64,000 nucleotides of DNA from Fimbriosthenelais zetlandica (lineage: Eukaryota), in the NCBI GenBank assembly GCA_977030845.1, contig OZ365112.1, positions 17,856,001 to 17,920,000 on the forward strand, read 5' to 3'. Shown piece after piece: positions 32,001 to 64,000 of this stretch; the stretch's first letter is position 1, and every line of letters begins with the position of its first letter. The translations under genes were made by a program, and so were the position numbers. A model generated the notes under the pieces. It worked only from the letters and a program-made list of their open reading frames with translations. It did not search any database and was not told where the DNA came from.

Positions 32001-32952
32001 ATTGTTTATAATGATATAGGCCTATTATACATACCTGTGTCAACAGTATAATTTCATGCAGATGTATGATAACCGTTTAAGGTACAATTAGTGAACATTT
32101 ATCGATCAGCTATCGTGTGTGGGGCCCACATTAGCCAGCACTTAGTTGATCTTCATGCATCTAGATATGCTAGCATATCTAGATGAGCTCATGGCAGATC
32201 TATATATGAGATTCTTACTCTGAGTTTAGATCAGTGCATGGATCTTACATGCATATCAGACTATACCCCTGTATACATATAGTGTGAGTATATAATTATC
32301 AACTCAGCCAAATATTATTTGGGCGTGGTGCTATGTGAATGACACCCTAAGAAAGTTAGCACATCTTAGCGCATCATGGAGACTGGATCCTACCAATAGC
32401 CAGTTAATGTGGTAAATGTTCCCAGTCAGTGTATAATATGTCAGTAACCACCACCCATTCTACTTTAACTATTACATGTCTCGAATGATAGGGAGAACAA
32501 ACGTTCAAAACTTGAAACCCGTAATCAATATCCATCATCTAAATAGATCTGATGGTCCGCCATTGTAGGGTGGCCAAGCTTTGAAGTTGGATATGGATAG
32601 ATTGTAGTTAAATATGAGTGATGAGACTATTTGTAAGTGAGGGAGCTAAAGCCTTTAATATTTGGGGCAGATAGTGGAAAGATGATTCACAAATACAAAA
32701 ACACAAATAGGCTAAACAGATGCCACGCCTCTTCAACAGCCTTCACCAATCAGAGCTTGAAGACAAAACAAGTAAGCCTATGGCTCCGAATTATAAACCA
32801 TTTTTCAATGAGTCTGCTACTTTGCAAGCGGTTCTTGTAGGTGATTTCACGACAGATGCATTCTACAGTAATCATCTCATGCAGCCCTCTCACAGTGCCA
32901 TTAAACTACGAGGTGATCGCACACTGTCAGAATTATTGTTCGTCCACGCCAT

Positions 32953-33988
32953 CCACCTGGTGTAACTGGTGGTACACAGGCGAACCACCTGGTGGTACAC
33001 AGGCGAACCACCTGGTGTAACTGACGGTGTACAGGCGAACCGCCTGCTGTAACTGGCGGTGTACAGGCGAACCACCTGGTGTAACTCTCAGTGTACAGGC
33101 GAACTACCTGGTGTAACTGGTGGTACACAGGCGAACCACCTGGTGTAACTGGTGGTACACAGGCGAACCACCTGGTGTAACTCTCAGTGTACAGGCAAAC
33201 CACCTGGTGTAACTCTCAGTGTACAGGCGAACCACCTGGTGTAACTGGCGGTGTACAGGCGAACCACCTGGTGTAACTGGCGGTGTACAGGCGAACCACC
33301 TGGTGTAACTGGCGGTGTACAGGCGAACCACCTGGTGTAACTCTCAGTGTACAGGCGAACCACCTGGTGTAACTCTCAGTGTACAGGCGAACTACCTGGT
33401 GTAACTGGCGGTGTACAGGCGAACCACCGGGTGTAACTCTCAGTGTACAGGCGAACCACCTGGTGTAACCGGCGGTGTACAGGCGAACCACCTGGTGTAA
33501 CTGGCGGTGTACAGGCGAACCACCTGCTGTAACTGGCGGTGTACAGGCGAACCACCTGGTGTAACTGGCGGTGTACAGGCGAACCACCTGCTGTAACTGG
33601 CAGTGTACAGGCGAACCACCTGCGACCACCTGCTGTAACTCAGTGTACAGGCGAACCACCTGCTGTAACTCTCAGTGTACAGGCGAACCACCTGGTGTAA
33701 CTGGCGGTGTACAGGCGAACCACCTGGTGTAACTCTCAGTGTACAGGCGAACCACCTGGTGTAACTGGCGGTGTACAGGCGAACCACCTGCTGTAACTGG
33801 CGGTGTACAGGCGAACCACCTGGTGTAACTCTCAGTGTACAGGCGAACCACCTGGTGTAACTGGCGGTGTACAGGCGAACCACCTGGTGTAACTCTCAGT
33901 GTACAGGCGAACCACCTGGTGTAACTGGCGGTGTACAGGCGAACCACCTGGTGTAACTGGCGGTGTACAGGCGAACCACCTGCTGTAA
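32953..33988. repeat. 32-bp-unit minisatellite, about 32 copies, with interspersed unit variants
   Basis: Consensus GAACCACCTGGTGTAACT[GGCG/CTCA]GTGTACAGGC; further variants CCTGCTG and GGTGGTACAC; a few truncated units. Confidence 0.97.
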
Positions 33989-34786
33989 GCACTGGTGTAG
34001 GGTATGGTAGTAAGTTATAGTATAATTATTTTAAAACGGGTTACATACGATGGTAAACATTCTGTTGGATCTTCAATATTTTATAACAAGAATACATTAA
34101 CTTACTTACAAATAATTACAATTAATTAAAAATGGGGTCATGAATCTCGAGGCTGGTACTTCAATAAAAACGTGCTATTGGGACTAAATGATGCCTGTTG
34201 GAAAGGGAACAGTTAGAAAGATTCCCTTTGGTCAAATCCTTTGTGAAAAGGAGATATTTTATCAGGCACAGCGCTTGATACAAGAGAAAAAATTTTTGGA
34301 GGGATAGGTTTCGAACATACGACATTTGACTGGCAATCGTGATACCAAAACCAAACGAACCTGTAGGTCTGTAGTTACTGTTCTGGTTCCTCAACCATCT
34401 GACACATCATATGATGGCTTGTAAAAGTTCCAAGCCAAGCTGTATTTACTCATCTTAGTACGAGTGAACGCCTTTCTTTCAATTTAAACAACCATTTACA
34501 AGGGCTTTACTGTCTGGTCTCTGAGACTAATGTGTGAAAATAAATGTAGTGCATTATCGACTGAGAGGGTTCCCGGGTGAATTGCTAAGGGAAGGACTAT
34601 GACCATGTAGAATAATGCCCTTTTCTGCTGATCATTGGGAATTATCAGCAAATATGGACTTCCTTTTGGCTCTTGGGGTTCATGCATTGACAAGGTGAAG
34701 CCTTCCGGAACACTCATGCCACTCCCTGTGAAAGGGTTTTTTCTATTTTCCAAGCTTGACTCCTCACATTCCCTTCCAGGAAGAAC

Positions 34787-47139: not shown

Positions 47140-48995
47140 GTAAGTTATAAATTTCTGCTATTTCATTTTCCTCAATAATATAACGAATCTTTCATTTGCG
47201 TCCACGGCCGATATCTAGAGCATGTATTGCAGCTTTTTAACCGACCATAATTCAAATAGAAGCTACATTCAAAGATCTGTAGTACATCGATATATCACAC
47301 TTTTTTAGCACAGTTGAAGCATACTCTTTCCTAAATTTGAAAAATTCTCTTTATGCTCGCTCCCATAACTTTGTATATAATATAATGGAGGTATTTCCAT
47401 ATTATTCTACACTGGAACTAATATGAAAAAATCTAAAATGTGTCGGCCTAGATCTTGATACTTTGCCATACCTTTTGTAAGAAGCATTTAGATATGGTTC
47501 ATTTCTTTTTGGTTAATGATGCTCAGGAGAATATCTAAATGATGTATTGGATCATTTATATCTATACCTCCATTACGCCCGCATTATCTAATGCCCACCA
47601 TTAAATATATACACTTTACTTCAGTCCCTATCATTACCTCTCCCCAATAGCTTCTCAATATCTTGACATATACAGATGCACACCTGTAGCCTTAACCAGA
47701 CTTTCACTATTATGGACTCATTGTAAAATAATTTTCATGTCCGTGCTGCACATATAGGCCTATAAGTGCGTGTCATATGAGGTAAATCGGTTAAAGTAAA
47801 AGGTATAACATGCATTCCTATCCAGGTACATGTAAGATGGTGTGCATGCGCCCTAATAAGACTCTAAAGATGATTATTCCCCGTGGTCTATGTGTACATG
47901 GGTGTGAAAGTCTACCGCCTGTCCCCAGCATGTACCATACATGCATTGTATGGAGTAATTATTGGGAGTCTCTTGTTAATAAAATGCAAAGGGTCTGTTC
48001 CGCCTAGTTGATGCTAATTGATGCTTTGCTGTGTCATTGTATGTTAATGGCTTTACAAATGGATATCTTCTCTTTATAGACTCATAAATCAGCATTTTTT
48101 CTTAGATTCCAGAAGTTTCTCCTGTCATCCTGGCCTGGCTCTTTCCTTTAATCAGAGTGACGTGGGAGTTAGACCTGAGTATGTGGAGCTACGTCTTCAA
48201 CATCAGTCAACCCACACCACCAGAGGGTCAATATTTGAAGCCGTCGGTAGCGGTACACTTTTGTTGAGGATGGTGGACAGCGCTGGGCATCAGATTCAGC
48301 AGATCCATCACGCCAAGTGGCTGAGAGATGAAGATGGCTCTATCTTTACAACTATCACTCACTTTGTTCAGGATTTACTGACCGCTGTCCAGAGCCAGGC
48401 TAACAGTTCAGGTGACCTCCACACCGCCTCGTTGCAGATCTGCCCACAAGGAAGGATGGTACGTCAGCAGAGATCTGTTGAGAATGGAGCTCTTGCTCTC
48501 AGAACTGAGGACTTCCTCTTGGTTGTGTTATCACGGGAGGAATCAGTCACCTGGGAAAACAAACTTTCACAGATTTCTCAAAGAAGAAGAAGAAGACATC
48601 GACATCAACATGGTCATTACAACGCTCATTTAAACAAGACGTCACTCCGTGCAAGACGTCGAGCCAAGAAAGGTCGCTGTACAAAAACTGACATGTATGT
48701 AGACTTTCAAACCCTCGGCTGGTCCGATGACATCGTTTACCCTGTGACTTACAATGCTGGGACATGCCTCGGCCGCTGTCCATCGCCTGTTGACCACTCA
48801 CTCCATCCTACTAACCATGCCATATTGCAAAGCATGATGCGCATGCATGACCGGAAGTTAAAGCGTCCTTGCTGTGTGCCTGTGACGTTAAAGCCGCTAA
48901 TGATGATACACAACTCTACATCTACAGGAGGAGGTAGCCGTGTGGAGATCCGCACCCACCCTGACATGGTGGTCCATGAATGTGGCTGCCGGTGA
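46827..48995 (+). CDS. nodal: Nodal-like TGF-beta superfamily ligand precursor, 400 aa, two exons (46827-47139, 48106-48995)
   Basis: Signal peptide MLWTSHVLLCCGIIFCVAMA; prodomain FLFNLYR and ELRLQ motifs; furin sites; 7-Cys cystine-knot domain with Nodal-type motifs DMYVDF..LGW...IVYP..YNA..C.G.CPSPV...LHPTNHAILQS and HPDMVVHECGC. Confidence 0.85.
48106..48995 (+). CDS. nodal: nodal exon 2 (rest of prodomain and entire mature domain)
   Basis: TTTTTTCTTAG acceptor is the only nearby one that keeps frame with the 277-aa ORF; TGA at 48993-48995. Confidence 0.9.
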
Positions 48996-54329: not shown

Positions 54330-56600
54330 AATGAAGTCTTGAGACAGGTATATCTAGACTGACATATTCTGATCCTATATTGGTCCCGGCCATAATCTTT
54401 GCATTGATGGGTATTTTACATAATAATAATCCAATGTCTTGGATATTTGGTACAGATTCTTCTATAGGGTCGAATTCATGCTGATGAAGCACAATATTGT
54501 CAGTACATAGTCTCTCCTTTCTAAATGTCGTTACTTTGGGACGTGAGCCTTGTGGGAAATCATTGACAACCTTTATATTCTCTCTGAAAGGTAAGCTGAC
54601 GAGGCAGCTTCCTATTTTCATAGCCTTGTACTGCAGTTTTAATCAGATAGAGGTAAAGGAGTGTTGAAGGGGACGGTCAAGTGCAGAGGATGGAGAGTAC
54701 AGGGCCAAAAATGAGTCCAACTGAGACAGGATCGATGGAGGTAGCTGAGGGAGTGGGAAACACAACGAGGACCGAGGTCTGTGACTATGGGCGTGATATG
54801 AGGGTTAGATGGGGCTAGATATTGCTCTGACAGAAAATGTAAAAAAAACTTTGCATGCTTTGGATGCAGCAATCTATTGAATCAGGAAGTAGCTCCAGGC
54901 TGAGCAAGATAATGAATCTTGGAGTCCTTTGCCGCGAAAAACATAGCGAAACAATTGGCTTTCACGTTGAGTTTCTAATTCCCCAGTAAAAATGTGGCCG
55001 TTTAGATAGTGGATGGAAAAATGAGATAAGATGGCAAGATAAGGAGGATCCAATCTATGTGACAGGGAAAGACATCTACACATGAGCCAGTATATTAAGA
55101 TAGTCAGCCAGTGGAGACATCTGACACAAGGGAGTGATTTATCATATCTCTCTGTACTCATCTAGATAAAGGCCTCGCCAAACCTCATTAGGAGTACCTC
55201 CCCTGCATGCCACATTTTAAATCCACATCCACTCCAAAAAAAATGAAGAAACACTCGTTGACACGCCATTTTAGAGGCCCTCAGTGAGCAATGGTTATCC
55301 CTTGAATGGTTCTGAATTAAAGGCTGGAAATTTAACTTTGCTTCAGATCCCTCGTCCTTATCCTGCCTGCCTTGTCATAAGCAGGACTGCTCGCACCAAA
55401 TGATGCCTTTTTTGTGCTTAGGCAAGTAATGATGGATGCTCCATCGAGTCCAATTTCTTTTCTAAAATAAACGTTGGTGATCCAACACAGAATGGACTTT
55501 ACATTTGGTGCATGAGAATGATTAAATTTCGAAATATTATGCGTCACATAGGTTATTAGACAAGACGAAGATTTATGCTCTTGGAGCAAGACGAGATGAC
55601 TGATTTTTGCCAGCCAACTCAGGATAACATCAAAATATTAGTCAAGTGAGCTGATAGAGCCTGGGACTGTTAATATGAAGTTTTGCTGGTGTGGTTGAGA
55701 TTGGTTCTAACCTAAGTCTGGTCATGTGTATGTCTGCTTGTTCTGCATGTTTGTGTACTTGTATTTGTGTATATTATTGTTTACTCGCCGGCTGTGGCGG
55801 CATATGAGGGACCTGGAAATGTGACCATCAGACTGCCAGGCTATAGTATAGATATAATACGGCTCCACACTATATAGCCTTGTAGAAATGAGAGATCCCT
55901 TTCAGGGAATTTCTTCATAAATTGGGTCAGCCTTCTACCTGACCAGGCAAGGTTGTTCATAATTAAGCCTCGGTATATCAAGCACCTGATACCATTTTGA
56001 TATGAGAAAGGCAATGAGCCTCCAATAGGCATGCTGAGGGGGCTATTGATGTGGATGAAATAGGACGGTTGGGAGGGATTTTAAAGGATGGATTATGCGG
56101 GGAGATTGGAAGAGAGCTGGTGAGAACAGAGACATGTGTCAAGGTGGAGGACATCGCCAAGAGAAAGGTCATAGAGGGAGCAGCTCCCAAAACAGGGAGG
56201 AATGCCAGGCAGCGGGCAAAATGAGTTGTCCTTCCCTGCTGCGGAACAGTCCGACAATGCCAATGGCTGAATGTTCTTACCCAATCGATTCAATGATTTC
56301 GCTGCATAGACATCTTCTATAAGGAATGTGTCTGTATGACTATTGAGATGGTATGCTACAGCGATCAAAGTCGGAATTTCAGTTCATCTGCAGGCTGCTG
56401 ATTCATAGTGTACTTCTAGCCAGGGCCCATAAAAAAGCCCCGGGGCCTGCCTGGAGCTGTTTGGAGGGTCCCCACAGACAATCACTCCCTTGTGGCTCCC
56501 TGCCTGACAACTACTTTACAAATATGTTTCAAGAGGCACCAGAGATACCAGAGGAAATAGTGCCATATCGATCTGTGACACAGTCAGTTCCAATCGTCCT
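54330..56600 (-). mobile_element. Decayed LINE ORF2 relic (APE endonuclease to RT)
   Basis: In correct 5'->3' order: CLLETY-like (CLQET), LGD..H, LDTCLCSHQL (IDLTLC-like), then TFRKERLCTDNI (GFRKGRSCTDNI-like); spread over many broken ORFs. Confidence 0.45.
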
Positions 56601-57740
56601 CATACCTCTGGTTGTCTGTATTCCTCCGACAAGTTCTCATGTAGAATATTCCTCTTATGTTGATTTCGAATGAGTTGTCGAACCTTGGGTGGATCAAAAC
56701 TTATATGTGATATTTCCGAATGATTATATGTAACAGTTTCAAAATTCATTTAACACATACACATACATTATTATTTTACCTCACACAAATATTTTACAAT
56801 GATAGGAAAAATTCAATCAAGACTTTCCAAATTATATTCAAGAATGCAAGATTTTACTTCCTCAATCACCAGGAAACACATATAAAAGATACTGTTACAA
56901 ATGTTCATTTGTTTGGGAACAGTGTCTAAGCATATATTAACACCTATTATATATAGGCTACCCTATTCCGTGTAAAGCTTTATGCTCTTAGATAAAGAAT
57001 AGCACCAAGACGAGCACCATTTCTGTTACCAAACCTTAGAGAATTTCAAAATCCTCCACTCACCTCTCCCGACAGTAGGTTATGTATAATAAAATGGGTC
57101 AAACCTTTTAATGGGTTTGTTGAGCATTATTGAGTCTCTTCATTTATGCTTAGGGAAAATGGTTATTGCTTTATGACCAACTGGGCAATAAAAATATCAA
57201 TGAATATGCAGTAACACTACATTCGACCACACACACGCTCAAGCCTTTTTTTCGATAGACCTTTGATACTAGGATATATCTGTAATGAATCTTTAAAATG
57301 CAATTACAACAGTCCACATTTCTGTATTTGGTGTGTACCCTGGTCTTTTCTGCCTTGTCTTTTTTACCCACGTATATGTTGGAAGTAATATGACGACTAA
57401 AACAAATAAATACCGTTTTCTGCCTCCAACATGATCATCTCCGAGGCTGAATTAGACAATGGAAAATCTTCACTTTGCATTAATCAGATTTTAAAACATC
57501 AGATAAGTCCCTAAACCAAAACCAAACATTACCATGCCTAATATTTTGGCCTAATCCAGAAGCGATAACAATATTTACGTATTATATCCTCTTAATAAAA
57601 TTTAAAAAAACTAAAGATATTATTGGGGAAATAGGGCATGCATTATCAAAATATATATTTGCTTTAGTTAGCTTGGAATTTATTATCTTTAATTAAATGA
57701 TTTAAAATCAAATTTTCAATCTAATCGAGAAGCTATTTCA

Positions 57741-57762
57741 TATATATATATATATATATATA
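57741..57762. repeat. (TA)11 microsatellite
   Basis: Read directly. Confidence 0.95.
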
Positions 57763-60700
57763 AAGGACGGGAATGATATTAACCCAGTTAGCTCAAGTGG
57801 TACCAGATTAGATTTCTCCCAAAATCTGATTAAATATGCTTAAGAAATGTCATCTTCTACCATTCAATATATATTTGGTTGATCACAATATCTGTCCTAT
57901 GTTATGGATCGAGTATGAAAAAATAATCTCAATCATGCAAAAATATGTACCTATAATAATTCTTAAAATTTTCAATCTGGTGGTTGCACGATCAGTTTCT
58001 TTCTGACTAAAATTTCTAATCGTGAGGATTTAAGTCCTGAGCATGGCTTTGCCTGAATCACCAGGCCACCAAAGCCTCAGTGAGGGAGCATGCCGCTCTA
58101 CCTTAAACAAAGGAGTTAGACTACAACATTTTCAGATTAAAATTTTCAGATTTCCCTCTGATTTATCCACTATAATGTATTGAAAATATTTGCCAAAATA
58201 ATCCCCGATAGGTAAAATTTGATAGGAAAATGGGGGGAAATCCCCAGGAAGAAAATACGATTTAAATACTTTGTTGGCTTGATGGGGGTGGGGGAAAGCA
58301 TTAAAAAGAAGACGGTAGTCCGTGTAAACATAATGAAGTATCTGATATCTAAGCAAACCAGTGAAAAAACATTGTATGATATAGTAAGATAAATTTTCAG
58401 AGGTGTGATCATCATGAACTTTGGTGGTAGAAGTAAGATAAATATATATTGTATCCTAAAGTCTAAATGGATTAGGGGTTCTACGAGCGGTTGATAGTAA
58501 CGGTTTGACGAAGCTCACGGTTAGGCAAGACCAGGCAACACTCCACATATACAGTGAATTCCGAAGCTAAACGACAAGATAAACTACTATAGAGGCACAT
58601 CTACGACAAACAAGAACATAAAGGGAAAAGTGTCTGATAATGACAATGTGTTTAAAATTTCCTTCTGTTTGAAATTTCCTTCTGTAAAATCTCAGTCAAA
58701 TTCAGACCCAAATTATTAGATCTTTTCTGGATTCATCATGATCGAACAGTAAATTTCAAAAATCATGAACATTATAAAGTATTAATTTAGAGAAATATTG
58801 TTCAGAATGCAGTCATAGATGGGCCTCCAATAAGTGTAGACAGTGCAATATTCACATTCACACAATGTGTTTAGAAAATCTAGCAGATCATCATAGGTCA
58901 TTCGAAAGGGCTAAACACACAGGGAAATCAAACACAAAGAAGAGTCCGTTATTTTTCCACGAAATATGCCATGTGATGAATAAAACTTTATTACAAAAAT
59001 AATGCTGAAAAATACACGCGACCAGATGAAAAGGCACAAATTTGCATTTGTGGGAGTGGCTCAATAGTACTTATGATATGACACAGAAAACTGCTACCAT
59101 AGTTACCCGCTCAAAGGACAAGGTCGATCGCCATAGTGTGAGGGGATGCCGATTACCTCAACCTTTGACCTTCAGTCAATAGGGTATTAATGTGCAAACG
59201 ACCTTCAAAAGGTCTGGTGGACAATCAAGCGGTGACACACCCCCTACACACTTTTCTTCAGACAACATTTCTTTACACACGGCTGGGTTTTAGACAGCAT
59301 TTAATTCGTTCCTTATTTCTTTTGAGCTAATTTTTTTCTAGTTGTAATTGAAATGGTCATTCAAATGTTACCAAGAAACTATGATTAATAATGTCGAAAA
59401 AGATTCATGTTCATGCTAATTGGAATAGAAATACACATTCTTAAACAGACTAGAAACTGCAACAATATGTCTAGAGTAAAATAAGAAAAATGTCATTCCA
59501 CAATGAAAAAAAAACACGGCATTCTACTGATTATTCCCAACAAGCACATCAACAAGATTGGTTGCCTTAAATATGGCGTATGGTTCAAGAGGGTTTTAGA
59601 TAAGAAAAGCGCATATCGAGTAAAACAACCAACTAGAAATACATGTGAAACCTAGTCATACAAATGAACCCGACAAACAAATCCCACTCGGTTTCACGAC
59701 AAACCCGGATTTTCTTTAAAGAGGACTATTCGAGTAGCTGCAGTGTACAAATTGTAAAGAAAAAATGCTACAAGGAATTGAGAAGTGCAGGAAAACACTA
59801 CATCTATTAATTGGACCGAACACGCCTTAAAACTTGTATTATCTGAAGTATGGTTGCCATAGAGACATACTTACAAGTCCCCCCATATAGGTCTGAGCAT
59901 TTTATGCTAGAGTTTTAAAGACTATCTTCTTTTGACTCGTATATTCTCTTATGTTCCTGTTCTAACTAAACTGGCTACATGTTCCAGCCCAGGTTAATCC
60001 TTAAAATTATCAACATTAATCAGTGTTATGATTTGTGCAGTGAGAAAACACGAGGCTTCACTCTTCCAGTAAATCGGGGCTAGTTCCCCAGTGCTATGAA
60101 ACCTGGCTTCATAATGATCTAAGTAGAATAAGTGTTACCAGTTTCCATACAATTCTGTTCAGCCAAAAATAATGGCATCTTGGATATGTAAGACATCTTA
60201 TACCACAGTGTCAGGGAAACCCTTATTTGTAAATAATATTGCCTTGAATGTTGGTCGTATCACGATGTATTTCCGTTTGTTTTTTTTCTACAGGACTCTA
60301 AGTTACTCAGAGTTTAAAATTTGTACAAATACTAGATATAAATAGACTACATGACAAATGTGGAGACAGAAATTGAAAGACCTATTCCAGTGCAACGAGA
60401 AATAGGTTATGTTGCCCTAGACTCGTGTCTTTCCCCCATCATGCAAAGACTTCTCTCTCTCAAATTTCTGCAGACAAACCTTGATTTAATCGGAAGTAAA
60501 TTGATTCCGAGATCACAAGAGGTTTTGTTTGACTGCACCACCGGAAATGGCACAAGATTTGGAATGTTCAGTTTTAAGAGACTTACATACAACACATGTG
60601 CAAATAACAGATCTGGCAGCTGGTGATCATTCTGATCAGAAGCTGATCATTACCCCATTCCACTTAACTATAATCAAGACCTCACTGAGACAGCTGGCTG

Positions 60701-61180
60701 AACAGAGAATGTAATTCCGTTGTGACTTATCAGAATCAGAACAACTTAGAAAGAATATGTAAGTTATGACGGGACGTGTAATAGTTGTAGAATAGCTGCT
60801 GCAATAGATTGATAGAAGAAAACGATCTAAATTTATCATCTCTGCCATGACTCTCATTTAGGAAAAAAATTATGAAATAAACTTCCAAGAAACAGGACTG
60901 GGATGGCATCCTTATGGCCTCAAAGAACCCTCCTGATATTGACTAGACAAAGACAATATCGTGCCCATCCTTGTTGGCATATGAACTACCACTGGACACA
61001 CAACGGATTTCTCAAATAAACCTTCCCTGGGACAACAGAGGGCCTGGCGGTGGGGCTTATAACATTTCTCCCTGACCATCCTCCTAAAGACAGTACCTCA
61101 ATGAACTGGTTCCATTCTGTTGGGATAGATGGTCTTCTTATCTTTAGCCATATGTTTTATCATTCTTTGTTTTTTTTTTG

Positions 61181-62107
61181 TTATGACTGGTCTTGGCCAT
61201 CCACAACAGAAGCGGAGGCAGTCCCATTGATGGCAGTGGCTGCGGGAGGTGAACTATTTTGGTCTGGCATAAACATTTGTGTGTAGTGCGCATTGGCTAG
61301 CAGTTTCTGAGGATCAAAATATTGTTGTCCGTAGGCACTGGCAGCAGGAGCTGCGGCATGCTGCATTTGTTGTAGGTAAGGGGCATACTGGGCATACTGG
61401 CTGTGGAGGGCGGCAGCCGCCGGATCCATTGCCATCCCACCCATAGTCGGCATTACAGGCATTCGGTACTGAAGTCCAGCACTGCTAACCGGTATGATCA
61501 TCTGGCCATACGGATTTGCCAAGGATGGAGGGAGCTGAACAGCTGCAGATCTTGCAGCCGTCAGTAGCTGCATTGGTTGGGCAGTGGCTGCCTGTACATG
61601 GGCAGTTGCAGCCTGGTGTGGATTTATCCTTTGGTAGGGGTGAACCATGGACTGTAGAGTTCTTCTTTGAGGACGCATGATGCCACCTCCACTCACAAGT
61701 AATGGTTGTTGAGCTTGCAGGGCTGCAAGACTTGCTGCCTGGTTGGGCATGGCAGATCGAGGTAGGGCAGCGGGCATGAACTGTGGTTGTCCATAGGGGA
61801 AAGGTATGAGTCCTGCCTGGGCAGAGGGAAGTTGGTGAGCCGCCATGGGCTGCATCATGCCACCATGAACCATCCTGGGGTAACCTCCTGCATAAGGAGG
61901 CACATGGACTTGAAGAGGGTGAGCGTTATGGAGACCTGCTGGGGAGGAAGATGTTATTTTAGGTTTGGATACGGAAACGGCTGGAGTCGGTGCTGTGGAA
62001 CTTGGGGAAGAGATTGATGGAGAAGCTTCAGTGTGTTGGGGATCTGCTGGCGGTTCCGAAGGGGCTTGGTTCGGCCCGGAGCCAGGGGGTGTTCCGTCTG
62101 TAGCCAT
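61181..62107 (-). CDS. 308-aa low-complexity Pro/Ala/Gln/Ser/Met-rich ORF of unknown family (standalone gene or terminal exon), overlapping the SPMAP1-like exon
   Basis: 927-nt stop-free frame, clearly more GC-rich than its flanks; Ala and Gln runs use mixed synonymous codons; abrupt A/T-rich sequence after the TAA; no globular domain recognised. Confidence 0.75.
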   Translation of the reverse strand: MATDGTPPGSGPNQAPSEPPADPQHTEASPSISSPSSTAPTPAVSVSKPKITSSSPAGLHNAHPLQVHVPPYAGGYPRMVHGGMMQPMAAHQLPSAQAGLIPFPYGQPQFMPAALPRSAMPNQAASLAALQAQQPLLVSGGGIMRPQRRTLQSMVHPYQRINPHQAATAHVQAATAQPMQLLTAARSAAVQLPPSLANPYGQMIIPVSSAGLQYRMPVMPTMGGMAMDPAAAALHSQYAQYAPYLQQMQHAAAPAASAYGQQYFDPQKLLANAHYTQMFMPDQNSSPPAATAINGTASASVVDGQDQS

Positions 62108-62185
62108 ATGAGCCGTTGTAACCCTTCACAGGTTTAATACCCTGCATAAACTGCGCATGTCCGTCCACAACTTCACGGGAATGAC
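62028..62185 (-). CDS. SPMAP1: Terminal coding exon of a C17orf98/SPMAP1-like (DUF4542) axonemal microtubule-associated protein: GHSREVVDGHAQFMQGIKPVKGYNGSYGYRRNTPWLRAEPSPFGTASRSPTH*
   Basis: Strong acceptor (CTGAC...TTTTGTTATAATTACAG|GT), phase-1 entry. The peptide closely resembles the C17orf98 C-terminus as I recall it (GHS..V.GH......KP..G.NG..GYRRNTP.LR...S.FG). Upstream exons were not found in the window, and the ORF track misses this exon. Confidence 0.75.
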
Positions 62186-64000
62186 CTGTAATTATAACAA
62201 AAGTCAGTCATAAGCATAATTGGAAATAACCCCACAAAATATGGACTTTAAATAGGTCTGATAATTATATTATTATGTACTAGAGATTTTAAGGAGTCCT
62301 GAAATATTTTCAAGGAATGACCTTAATAAGAAACACTATAACAGTGTCCGAAAAACTTAGATGGAATATATAATTTCATGTTGATAAACTATATTTTATA
62401 ATGTCAATGTATAATTTGGTCGTAAAACAAAAAGGATTTAATGTATACGATAATCAAATAATTTGTACAAGTTGCAAAATAAGCTAGACCTTAGAACCAG
62501 GTGATAATTAACCTACAGTGTTAACATGCATCATGAAGAACGGAACACTGATACATATATATGTTGAACCAAGCCAAGTACTGGGAACGCAAACAAACTA
62601 AAAAACTGTCTGTCTTAATATCAGAATTTTATAGTTACTGGCAATGAGCAAATGACAACTGTAACCATAATGCCCCAAATCACTCATGACTTGATAATCT
62701 AAAACGATGAAAGACACACAAAGATAATACCAGGAATAATCATTATGTATGTACAGTCATTTAGAAATTATGGACTCAACAAAGCACAGACTAGATTTCA
62801 CGCGTTTACAGGAGACAAAAGAAGTGATAAAAGGACATGATGACACAGAAAGATAGAACTCAGGGGGGATTTTAGACGTCAATTATGTTATTCTTAAAAT
62901 AGACATTCCACAGCCATGACCAAAGTACACTTCCAAGCAAGATGGTCAAATCGATCCTGTTCATATTAATCTATATTTAGCCCCTCCCTCCTATCCCCCA
63001 GAACAAATACATGAGCCCGATCCACAGCCCCAAACGCTATACTACTATCATGTGCCTATCTGATCAGAGGATCTACAGAGAACAACCTCCTTACCCTATT
63101 CTATAATCACGATTGTTCACAAATATGGATCAACCTTGAAAATCAAAATTCTTTCATTATACTGGAAAGAATAACTGTAGTCAGGATGGTGGAATAAGGA
63201 ACGATCTGACGACCTAGATCTGGCTAAGATATTGCCTAGAGCGCCATAAATGAATAGCCCTATAGGGGATGGTACTGAATTAGGCCACCATTACTCAGTC
63301 TGCCTTTTAGCGATTGCCTAAAGGGGCAACAGATCAGATCACTGTAATCAACTTATGGGGGATCACACCAGCCCCCGACTAAATCTGCTTTGTTTGTACT
63401 AACAATTTACACCTCCTTCGTGACTCACAACTTCTATAACTGATCTGAGGAAATGTTTAGAACGTAACTCATCTAATTCTGTATTATTGATGAAAACACA
63501 AATTTCAATAGACATTTAAAAACAAAATACAATGACAGACCAACTGGCATATACACTAGTCAAACGCATCTCACTCTATCTACACACATACACACACCTT
63601 GTCAAGGTCAACCAAACCTCATCACGTAACCAAAATAACCAGTATGTGTACCATTTTCACCAACACAATCTCACTCTGATTTTTTCCCATCACAAGAGGA
63701 TAATACATTGGACTTGTTTACAACCCTAGTGGTATGCAGTAGTATACCAGAGACCCACCAACCACGTTTCAAAACGAGAGGCTTTTTTCCAGTGGGTGCC
63801 TCTAGTAACATGCGCGTGTCCATGCAGGAGGAGTATGCCAACAATTTCTTCTCCCTCCTATCCCCCATACACATACACACCCCTCACACACGTTTCTGGT
63901 AAGTTGCAGCAAATTGAGTTATTAGCCAGAATAGAGAAGAGGAAAGATGAAGGTACAGACCAATATGATAGATTGGGGGAGGCAAGGTTGGGTGTTTAAC

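Follow-up and report, generated by a model that had tools for sequence, protein, structure and literature searches.

We analysed a window of 64,000 nucleotides (nt) from Fimbriosthenelais zetlandica (GenBank assembly GCA_977030845.1, contig OZ365112.1, positions 17,856,001 to 17,920,000 of the forward strand), which contains no N stretch, and focused on a locus near its right-hand end at which two reading frames of the same strand overlap. The first frame is the end of an SPMAP1-like (C17orf98) gene and the second is a long open reading frame (ORF), here called ORF2, which begins inside the SPMAP1 coding sequence (CDS) and continues into what would otherwise be its 3' untranslated region (3'UTR). 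All coordinates are window positions, and both the SPMAP1-like exon and ORF2 lie on the minus strand (Table 1).

Table 1 The SPMAP1/ORF2 locus and its features. L001 is a contig from a sister species; dN/dS is the ratio of nonsynonymous to synonymous divergence; uORF, upstream ORF.
Feature	Position	Strand	Basis
SPMAP1-like (C17orf98) terminal coding exon	62028..62185	-	Pfam PF15075, translation, same exon and acceptor in L001
10-codon uORF in the ORF2 frame (ATG at 62158 within the conserved GHA codons, TGA at 62128-62126)	62126..62158	-	ATG map
ORF2, 308 codons plus TAA stop (61183-61181), +1 frame relative to SPMAP1	61181..62107	-	ORF listing, homologues, dN/dS
Doubly read stretch of 80 nt (last 26 SPMAP1 codons plus stop, equal to ORF2 codons 1-27)	62028..62107	-	synonymous and +1-frame comparisons
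Non-coding stretch downstream of ORF2, candidate long 3'UTR	58814..61180	-	blastn, binned identity, alignment with L001

The SPMAP1-like exon follows the acceptor ttacag/GT at 62186/62185, with its AG at 62187-62186, and opens with GT CAT TCC. The codons from 62183 to 62031 encode a peptide of 51 residues, which is terminated by a TGA at 62030-62028. A Pfam scan of this peptide returned PF15075 with 59.7 bits (gathering cut-off 27; E 5.3e-16), the match spanning profile positions 93-134 of 134, i.e. the C-terminal third of SPMAP1-like proteins. The part of the exon ahead of the overlap shows a dN/dS of 0.07 in comparison with L001, and the C-terminal motif G(Y/F)xGxYG(Y/F)RRNTPWLR together with the tail is the same or nearly the same in at least 40 lophotrochozoan orthologues. 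With its YG[YF]RRNTPWLR motif and the tail ...PSPFGTASRSPTH, which is common to many lophotrochozoan orthologues, the frame in the window represents an ordinary family member. Judged by the Pfam match and this tail, the upstream frame is predicted to be the last coding exon of an axonemal microtubule protein of the ordinary SPMAP1-like type; the mammalian SPMAP1 is a sperm-specific axonemal microtubule-associated protein (PMC11779644). No upstream SPMAP1 exon was recognised by eye in the stop-free pieces of 62186-64000, on which no HMM scan was performed.

Two deviations were seen among SPMAP1 orthologues from other sources. In L009, P0014, P0021, P0022, P0024-P0026, P0035 and P0045 a sense codon follows ...SRSPxH in place of the usual TGA, and these proteins extend by about 18 further residues (...HEITV...VQAK); the named ones belong to the bivalves Potamilus and Dreissena. 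In three eukaryote metagenome contigs of about 5.3 kb (L005, L006 and L013), an apparently intronless SPMAP1-like ORF with a divergent tail (...KPSVFIGKLDNRSLVP) adjoins an oppositely oriented ORF of about 1200 codons.

The ATG of ORF2 at 62107 is located inside the codons TAT GGC TAC AGA CGG, which encode the YGYRR part of the SPMAP1 motif. Seven codons upstream of this ATG, the ORF2 frame is interrupted by the TGA at 62128-62126, and it can therefore not be entered via the acceptor at 62185. ORF2 is the longest ORF in the listed part of the window, and the other five frames of the same stretch contain 6-17 stops. The probability that a frame of 308 codons contains no stop is 3e-5 given its composition, and 1 out of 20,000 shuffles stayed open, so that the length of ORF2 is not expected by chance. 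An initial annotation of this DNA had pointed to the strong acceptor, the SPMAP1-like tail and its stop, to the ATG within the YGYRR codons, the long open frame down to 61181 and the overlap of 80 nt, and to the in-frame stop that bars entry via the acceptor; all of these elements were confirmed at their coordinates.

Homologues of ORF2 were searched for with a word-indexed search of 5.8 billion clusters, a profile search and an exhaustive HMMER search of 1.8 billion representatives without a length filter. The only real matches were three proteins, P0001, P0002 and P0003, all of them unnamed ORF predictions from contigs that lack annotation. P0001, with 316 aa, shares 81-84% identity with ORF2, P0002 and P0003 comprise 338 and 288 aa, respectively, and all three begin at the same methionine over the same SPMAP1 tail. 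The profile search added no ORF2 members to those already found, an exact-sequence look-up showed that the ORF2 of the window is not on record, and a search for related loci in metagenome contigs confirmed no ORF2 locus. One further candidate, P0004, matched weakly in the exhaustive search of representatives (E 2e-6, distributed over eight short stretches) and was taken as low-complexity. Pfam returned only a chance match of ORF2 to DUF3717 (E 0.24), and the ESM Atlas only low-complexity look-alikes with scores of up to 0.8. A transposable element or repeat was rejected as an explanation, ORF2 being single-copy.

The alignment of the four proteins comprises 84 invariant columns, which are clustered in motifs such as PLQVHVP, GLIPFPYG, GGGIMRPxRRT, HPYQR, LQYRxP and DPQKLLxNAHY, and every indel preserves the frame. 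For the 281 codons of ORF2 outside the overlap, the comparison with L001 gave a dS of 1.03, a dN of 0.095 and hence a dN/dS of 0.092, whereas the same nucleotides contain stops and show dN/dS values above 1 in the other two frames. DNA of ORF2 bearers could be compared for the window, L001 and a more distant contig, L004, while P0003 was compared as protein. Both L001 and L004 encode an identical SPMAP1 tail (...EPSPFGTASRSPTH) plus stop over the first 26 codons of ORF2. Likewise, the first 27 residues of P0003 are compatible at 26 of 27 positions with a back-translation into the SPMAP1 tail and its stop, compared to an average of 7 of 27 and a maximum of 13 for random 27-mers taken from ORF2 bodies. 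By these measures, ORF2 is a lineage-restricted and fast-evolving, yet clearly selected predicted protein that is common to four taxa. One could also suppose that ORF2 is untranslated and that its open frame and its conservation reflect a function of the 3'UTR at the level of RNA or DNA, which would agree with a low-complexity product that lacks a known domain. However, substitutions are codon-periodic with a low dN/dS in one frame only, all indels across the four taxa are multiples of three, and the frame has stayed open at saturated synonymous divergence, which makes this explanation very improbable.

We then compared the two frames within the overlap, where the third positions of SPMAP1 codons are the second positions of ORF2 codons, so that a drop in synonymous differences of SPMAP1 is the signature to be expected from selection on the ORF2 peptide. 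The initial annotation had proposed such a lowered synonymous divergence as a check. Indeed, when the SPMAP1 frame of the window was compared with that of L001, 9 of 21 codons ahead of the overlap differed synonymously, but 2 of 25 within it (Fisher p 0.007), and in comparison with L004 the respective counts were 8 of 10 and 9 of 23 (p 0.036).

Outgroup DNA was obtained with a degenerate pattern for YG[YF]RRNTPWLR, which led to ten further SPMAP1 loci on contigs of metagenomes and metatranscriptomes, and a protein search yielded 46 single-module SPMAP1 proteins of 144-236 aa, three of which were compared as DNA. All named members among the 46 are lophotrochozoans (nemertean, annelid, mollusc, brachiopod and bryozoan). 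Neither an ORF2-like frame nor tblastn similarity to ORF2 was detected in the ten further loci or in the three compared as DNA, and the negative tblastn result also rules out that ORF2 is present but displaced in the outgroup 3'UTRs. The window thus differs from all other SPMAP1 loci and mRNAs examined, none of which has an ORF2-like frame. Since several outgroup loci encode a nearly identical SPMAP1 tail without ORF2, they represent a clean control. In the overlap, the three pairs of bearers showed synonymous differences at 2/25, 9/23 and 9/23 codons, compared to 13-20 of 21-23 in pairs involving an outgroup sequence. The identity in the +1 frame was 24, 16 and 16 of 26 residues for the bearer pairs and 3-12 for the outgroup-involving ones (42 pairs), and the nucleotide identity was 79, 68 and 68 of 81 as opposed to 45-61. 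In frame 0, most of these pairs share 22-25 of 26 residues (16-20 for pairs with L012). The difference between 9/23 in bearers and 20/23 in an outgroup pair with the same tail is significant (p 0.0018). In addition, the tyrosine codon holding the ATG of ORF2 reads TAT in each of the three bearer DNAs, whereas five of eight outgroup sequences have TAC.

From the homologues, the dN/dS values and the constraint on the overlap we conclude that one strand encodes two predicted proteins at this locus, the SPMAP1 tail and ORF2, with both frames under purifying selection, and the initial annotation was thus right in regarding it as a true dual-frame locus with a real ORF2 coding sequence. On the same grounds, ORF2 is almost certainly a selected coding sequence with an overlap that is constrained in both frames.

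With regard to its synthesis, sequence comparison suggests that ORF2 is probably made as a separate polypeptide by translation from its own AUG at 62107. The first methionine (M1) and the following alanine (A2) are invariant in the four proteins, M1 is in all of them the only methionine ahead of the conserved PLQVHVP motif, and the linker of serine, threonine and proline residues between the overlap and this motif varies from 13 to 37 residues with the frame kept. M1 is favoured because an alternative methionine is missing, the linker remains in frame, the candidate acceptor is not conserved, constraint sets in early and known frameshift sites are absent. The methionine at position 79 (61873) does lie in an AGG ATG G context, which the initial annotation had described as stronger. 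However, P0002 and P0003 lack this methionine, which in addition comes after the conserved PLQVHVP motif; Met79 was consequently rejected as a conserved start of ORF2.

Several observations weigh against a start at M1 and the dual coding connected with it. M1 has a weak context, with C at -3 and G at +4, the exon contains two earlier ATGs, and the remainder of the SPMAP1 gene lies beyond 64000 and thus outside the window. No conserved promoter-like block could be aligned in the available 800 nt of the L001 intron. The arrangement is represented by three independent lineages, with DNA for two bearers beyond the window, so that the statistics are based on few sites. Moreover, the nucleotide conservation upstream of the SPMAP1 stop could in principle reflect an RNA element instead of a second frame.

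The frame could instead be reached by splicing, in which case ORF2 would form the terminal exon of another gene or of a splice variant. An exon beyond the window would then be joined to an acceptor that lies within the exon and past the TGA at 62128-62126, and 62107 would not be a start. Alternative splicing is the commonest cause of exons that are read in two frames, the upstream gene structure lies outside the window, and AG dinucleotides do occur in the interval, including gccAG/cAG near 62045 in all three DNAs. The initial annotation had named a cryptic acceptor at 61993/61992, and the site (ccacag) is indeed present in the window. However, its CAG corresponds to CTG in L001, and constraint on the +1 frame already acts upstream of it; due to this lack of conservation in the sister species, it was rejected as the entry to ORF2. 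A second AG, that of GAA CCA AGY, is lost in P0003 according to back-translation. The candidate acceptors lack pyrimidine tracts, and no AG in the interval was found that is both kept in the four bearers and preceded by such a tract. Furthermore, the first 19 codons of the overlap are already constrained in the +1 frame, with 1 synonymous difference compared to about 10 expected at the upstream rate. The invariance of M1 and A2 argues in the same direction, as does the finding that none of 15 billion proteins contains ORF2 fused to anything else. Taken together, we regard entry by splicing as rather unlikely.

Recoding, also listed in the initial annotation, would require a programmed +1 ribosomal frameshift in the overlap or at the SPMAP1 stop, resulting in an SPMAP1-ORF2 fusion, with the conserved nucleotides acting as a frameshift stimulator. 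ORF2 is indeed in the +1 frame, the 21 nt ahead of the SPMAP1 stop are nearly identical in the three bearer DNAs, the CCC_UGG and CCC_UUY sites are conserved, with a proline tRNA that could re-pair on CCU, and a CUGGC...GCCAG hairpin may form after CCC_UGG. Nevertheless, no known +1 frameshift motif was found. The antizyme frameshift site reads UCC_UGA_U, and the SPMAP1 stop context, CAC_UGA_A/U, is unlike it. The shift site of influenza PA-X and PLEKHM2, YCC_UUU_CG (PMC11451614), is likewise absent, the corresponding sequences being CCC_UUC_GGA in the window and CCC_UUU_GGA in L004. Sequence 3' of the SPMAP1 stop is not conserved between the window and L004, Rfam gave no match over 60000-64000, and the consensus fold of the overlap, including the hairpin, consists of invariant pairs only and provides no usable covariation. 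A conserved ATG would moreover be needless in a fusion, and such events are very rare in cellular genes. Overall, we consider a frameshift quite improbable.

Translation from the AUG at 62107 raises the question of which transcript carries ORF2. Neither AATAAA nor ATTAAA is present between the SPMAP1 stop and the ORF2 stop in the three species, so that ORF2 must be part of every SPMAP1 mRNA in which this exon is used. Due to the lack of a conserved poly(A) signal between the two stops, both cistrons appear to share the last exon and a long conserved 3'UTR. ORF2 could accordingly be translated from the full-length SPMAP1 mRNA as a true bicistronic messenger, either by leaky scanning or by internal entry. 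This variant, which forms part of the reading with a start at 62107, would closely match MOCS2A/B, in which two frames share 77 bp and leaky scanning is used (PMC9607355). However, spliced SPMAP1 mRNAs of six relatives contain 150-180 codons and 5-9 AUGs ahead of the motif, which makes leaky scanning of the MOCS2 type unlikely, and the two further ATGs in the exon itself and the weak context of M1 add to this. Leaky scanning through a full SPMAP1 mRNA is hence the less likely route, and we consider the bicistronic variant as a whole unlikely.

The most likely route to the start at 62107 would be a shorter or alternatively started transcript, which brings scanning ribosomes to the last exon. 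The exon contains a uORF in the ORF2 frame (Table 1), which spans an SPMAP1-frame ATG at 62147 and ends 18 nt before the ATG of ORF2, and an equivalent uORF of 7 codons is found in L001. Translation of this uORF may carry ribosomes past the AUG at 62147 and allow reinitiation at 62107. The uORF is closed by a +1-frame stop that the codons GT(G/A) A.. form at a valine, seven codons ahead of the ORF2 ATG. All three bearer DNAs have this stop, whereas none of seven outgroup sequences does. The contig L004 starts 34 nt before M1 and thus past both upstream ATGs of the exon, which leaves M1 as its first ATG; this is a weak hint only. Ahead of the exon, the intron sequences of the window and L001 are too different to be aligned.

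As to the origin of ORF2, its AUG probably originated within the conserved codons for YGYRR, where TAT GGC can be read as ATG GC., and the ORF2 body takes up what is 3'UTR in other animals. A stronger version of this reading places the start of ORF2 about 500 nt into the CDS of an axonemal protein mRNA and has it reached in a non-canonical way, be it by internal ribosome entry, by reinitiation guided by the uORF on a nested transcript or by a +1 shift of a new type, with ORF2 having been born by overprinting of the YGYRR codons and extension into the former 3'UTR. This is possible, but we consider it doubtful. If true, it would represent a datable and sizeable new gene in a spiralian lineage, with its expression tied to the formation of cilia or sperm.

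Conservation extends beyond the stop of ORF2. About 2.4 kb past it can be aligned with L001, with 75% identity over 1.85 kb, including conserved blocks of 88-91% at 59710-59414 and 97-98% at 59113-58914. The block 58814-59830 is 90% identical to L001 overall, despite nearly saturated synonymous sites and a neighbouring intron that cannot be aligned. The stretch is single-copy within the window, and poly(A) signals are located at 58992 (AATAAA) and at 60490 and 59305 (ATTAAA). No conserved ORF of at least 45 aa was found in 58814-61180, Rfam returned only a snoRNA-like match well below threshold over 56500-60700, and the ultraconserved block showed an ordinary folding energy on both strands. 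On the simplest reading of the alignment, the stretch would be the long, strongly conserved 3'UTR of a shared SPMAP1/ORF2 transcript; the block 58814-59830 may also be an independent ultraconserved non-coding element.

The ORF2 product is composed of 17% alanine, 14% proline, 11% glutamine, 9% serine and 6% methionine, contains no cysteine or tryptophan and has a pI of 8.9. AlphaFold, applied to the four-sequence alignment, gave a mean pLDDT of 46 and essentially no secondary structure, which suggests that the protein is most likely intrinsically disordered. It would probably act via six conserved short linear motifs and not via a fold; the condensate-type character assumed in the initial annotation is speculation.

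The nearest described architecture is that of MOCS2A and MOCS2B, of which MOCS2A comprises 88 aa. As in the window, two ORFs of the same strand overlap such that one stretch (77 bp in MOCS2, 80 nt here) encodes the C-terminal end of one protein and the N-terminus of the other. In MOCS2, leaky scanning is documented, whereas the upstream CDS in the window probably contains several AUGs in its 150-180 codons. Both MOCS2 products belong to the same enzyme as its subunits, while SPMAP1 and ORF2 are not known to be functionally linked, and MOCS2 is ancient, whereas ORF2 is lineage-restricted. The POLGARF protein, encoded in the POLG mRNA, is disordered, as is predicted for ORF2. POLGARF is also a long overlapping and lineage-restricted frame (260 codons) that was detected via synonymous-site constraint (bioRxiv 10.1101/2020.03.06.980391); it differs in starting from a CUG in the 5' leader and overlapping the 5' part of the main CDS, unlike ORF2, which starts from an AUG at the 3' end of a CDS and lies mostly in former 3'UTR. 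In MOCS2, the last 77 bp of exon 3 are the doubly coding part, an arrangement that is very rare in higher eukaryotes (PMC9607355). PLEKHM2 and influenza PA-X resemble the locus by a region near the end of the CDS that is doubly read in the +1 frame and shows enhanced synonymous conservation (PMC11451614), and differ from it by their YCC_UUU_CG shift site, which the ORF2 locus lacks, and by the conserved AUG that the ORF2 frame possesses after its upstream stop.

No such overlap for SPMAP1 turned up in the literature searched. New here are the orphan ORF2 protein family and SPMAP1 as an overlap partner, while the type of overlap itself is already known. Conserved same-strand overlaps of two protein genes are very rare in animals, and each well-supported one represents a natural test bed for the access of ribosomes to a second start codon. 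They are missed by gene-prediction pipelines, as illustrated by ORF2, for which three unnamed ORF calls exist among the approximately 15 billion proteins searched. Loci that have ORF2 and loci that lack it hardly differ in their SPMAP1 tail, so that it is possible to date and study how a long frame originated from an overprinted motif and a 3'UTR. In addition, a change of TAT to TAC would remove the ORF2 start while being silent for SPMAP1.

Two further features of the window lie apart from this locus. On the plus strand, a single-exon ORF of 277 codons (48162-48995) ends in a cystine-knot domain of the TGF-beta/BMP type (...CVPV...HECGCR) and reached an atlas score of 0.94 to GDF/BMP clusters, which are chordate-dominated. 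On the minus strand, 32901-33992 contains overlapping ORFs that consist of tandemly repeated units similar to VRLYTASYTRWFACTPPVTPGGSPVHRQLHQV; this is probably a repeat array or a minisatellite.

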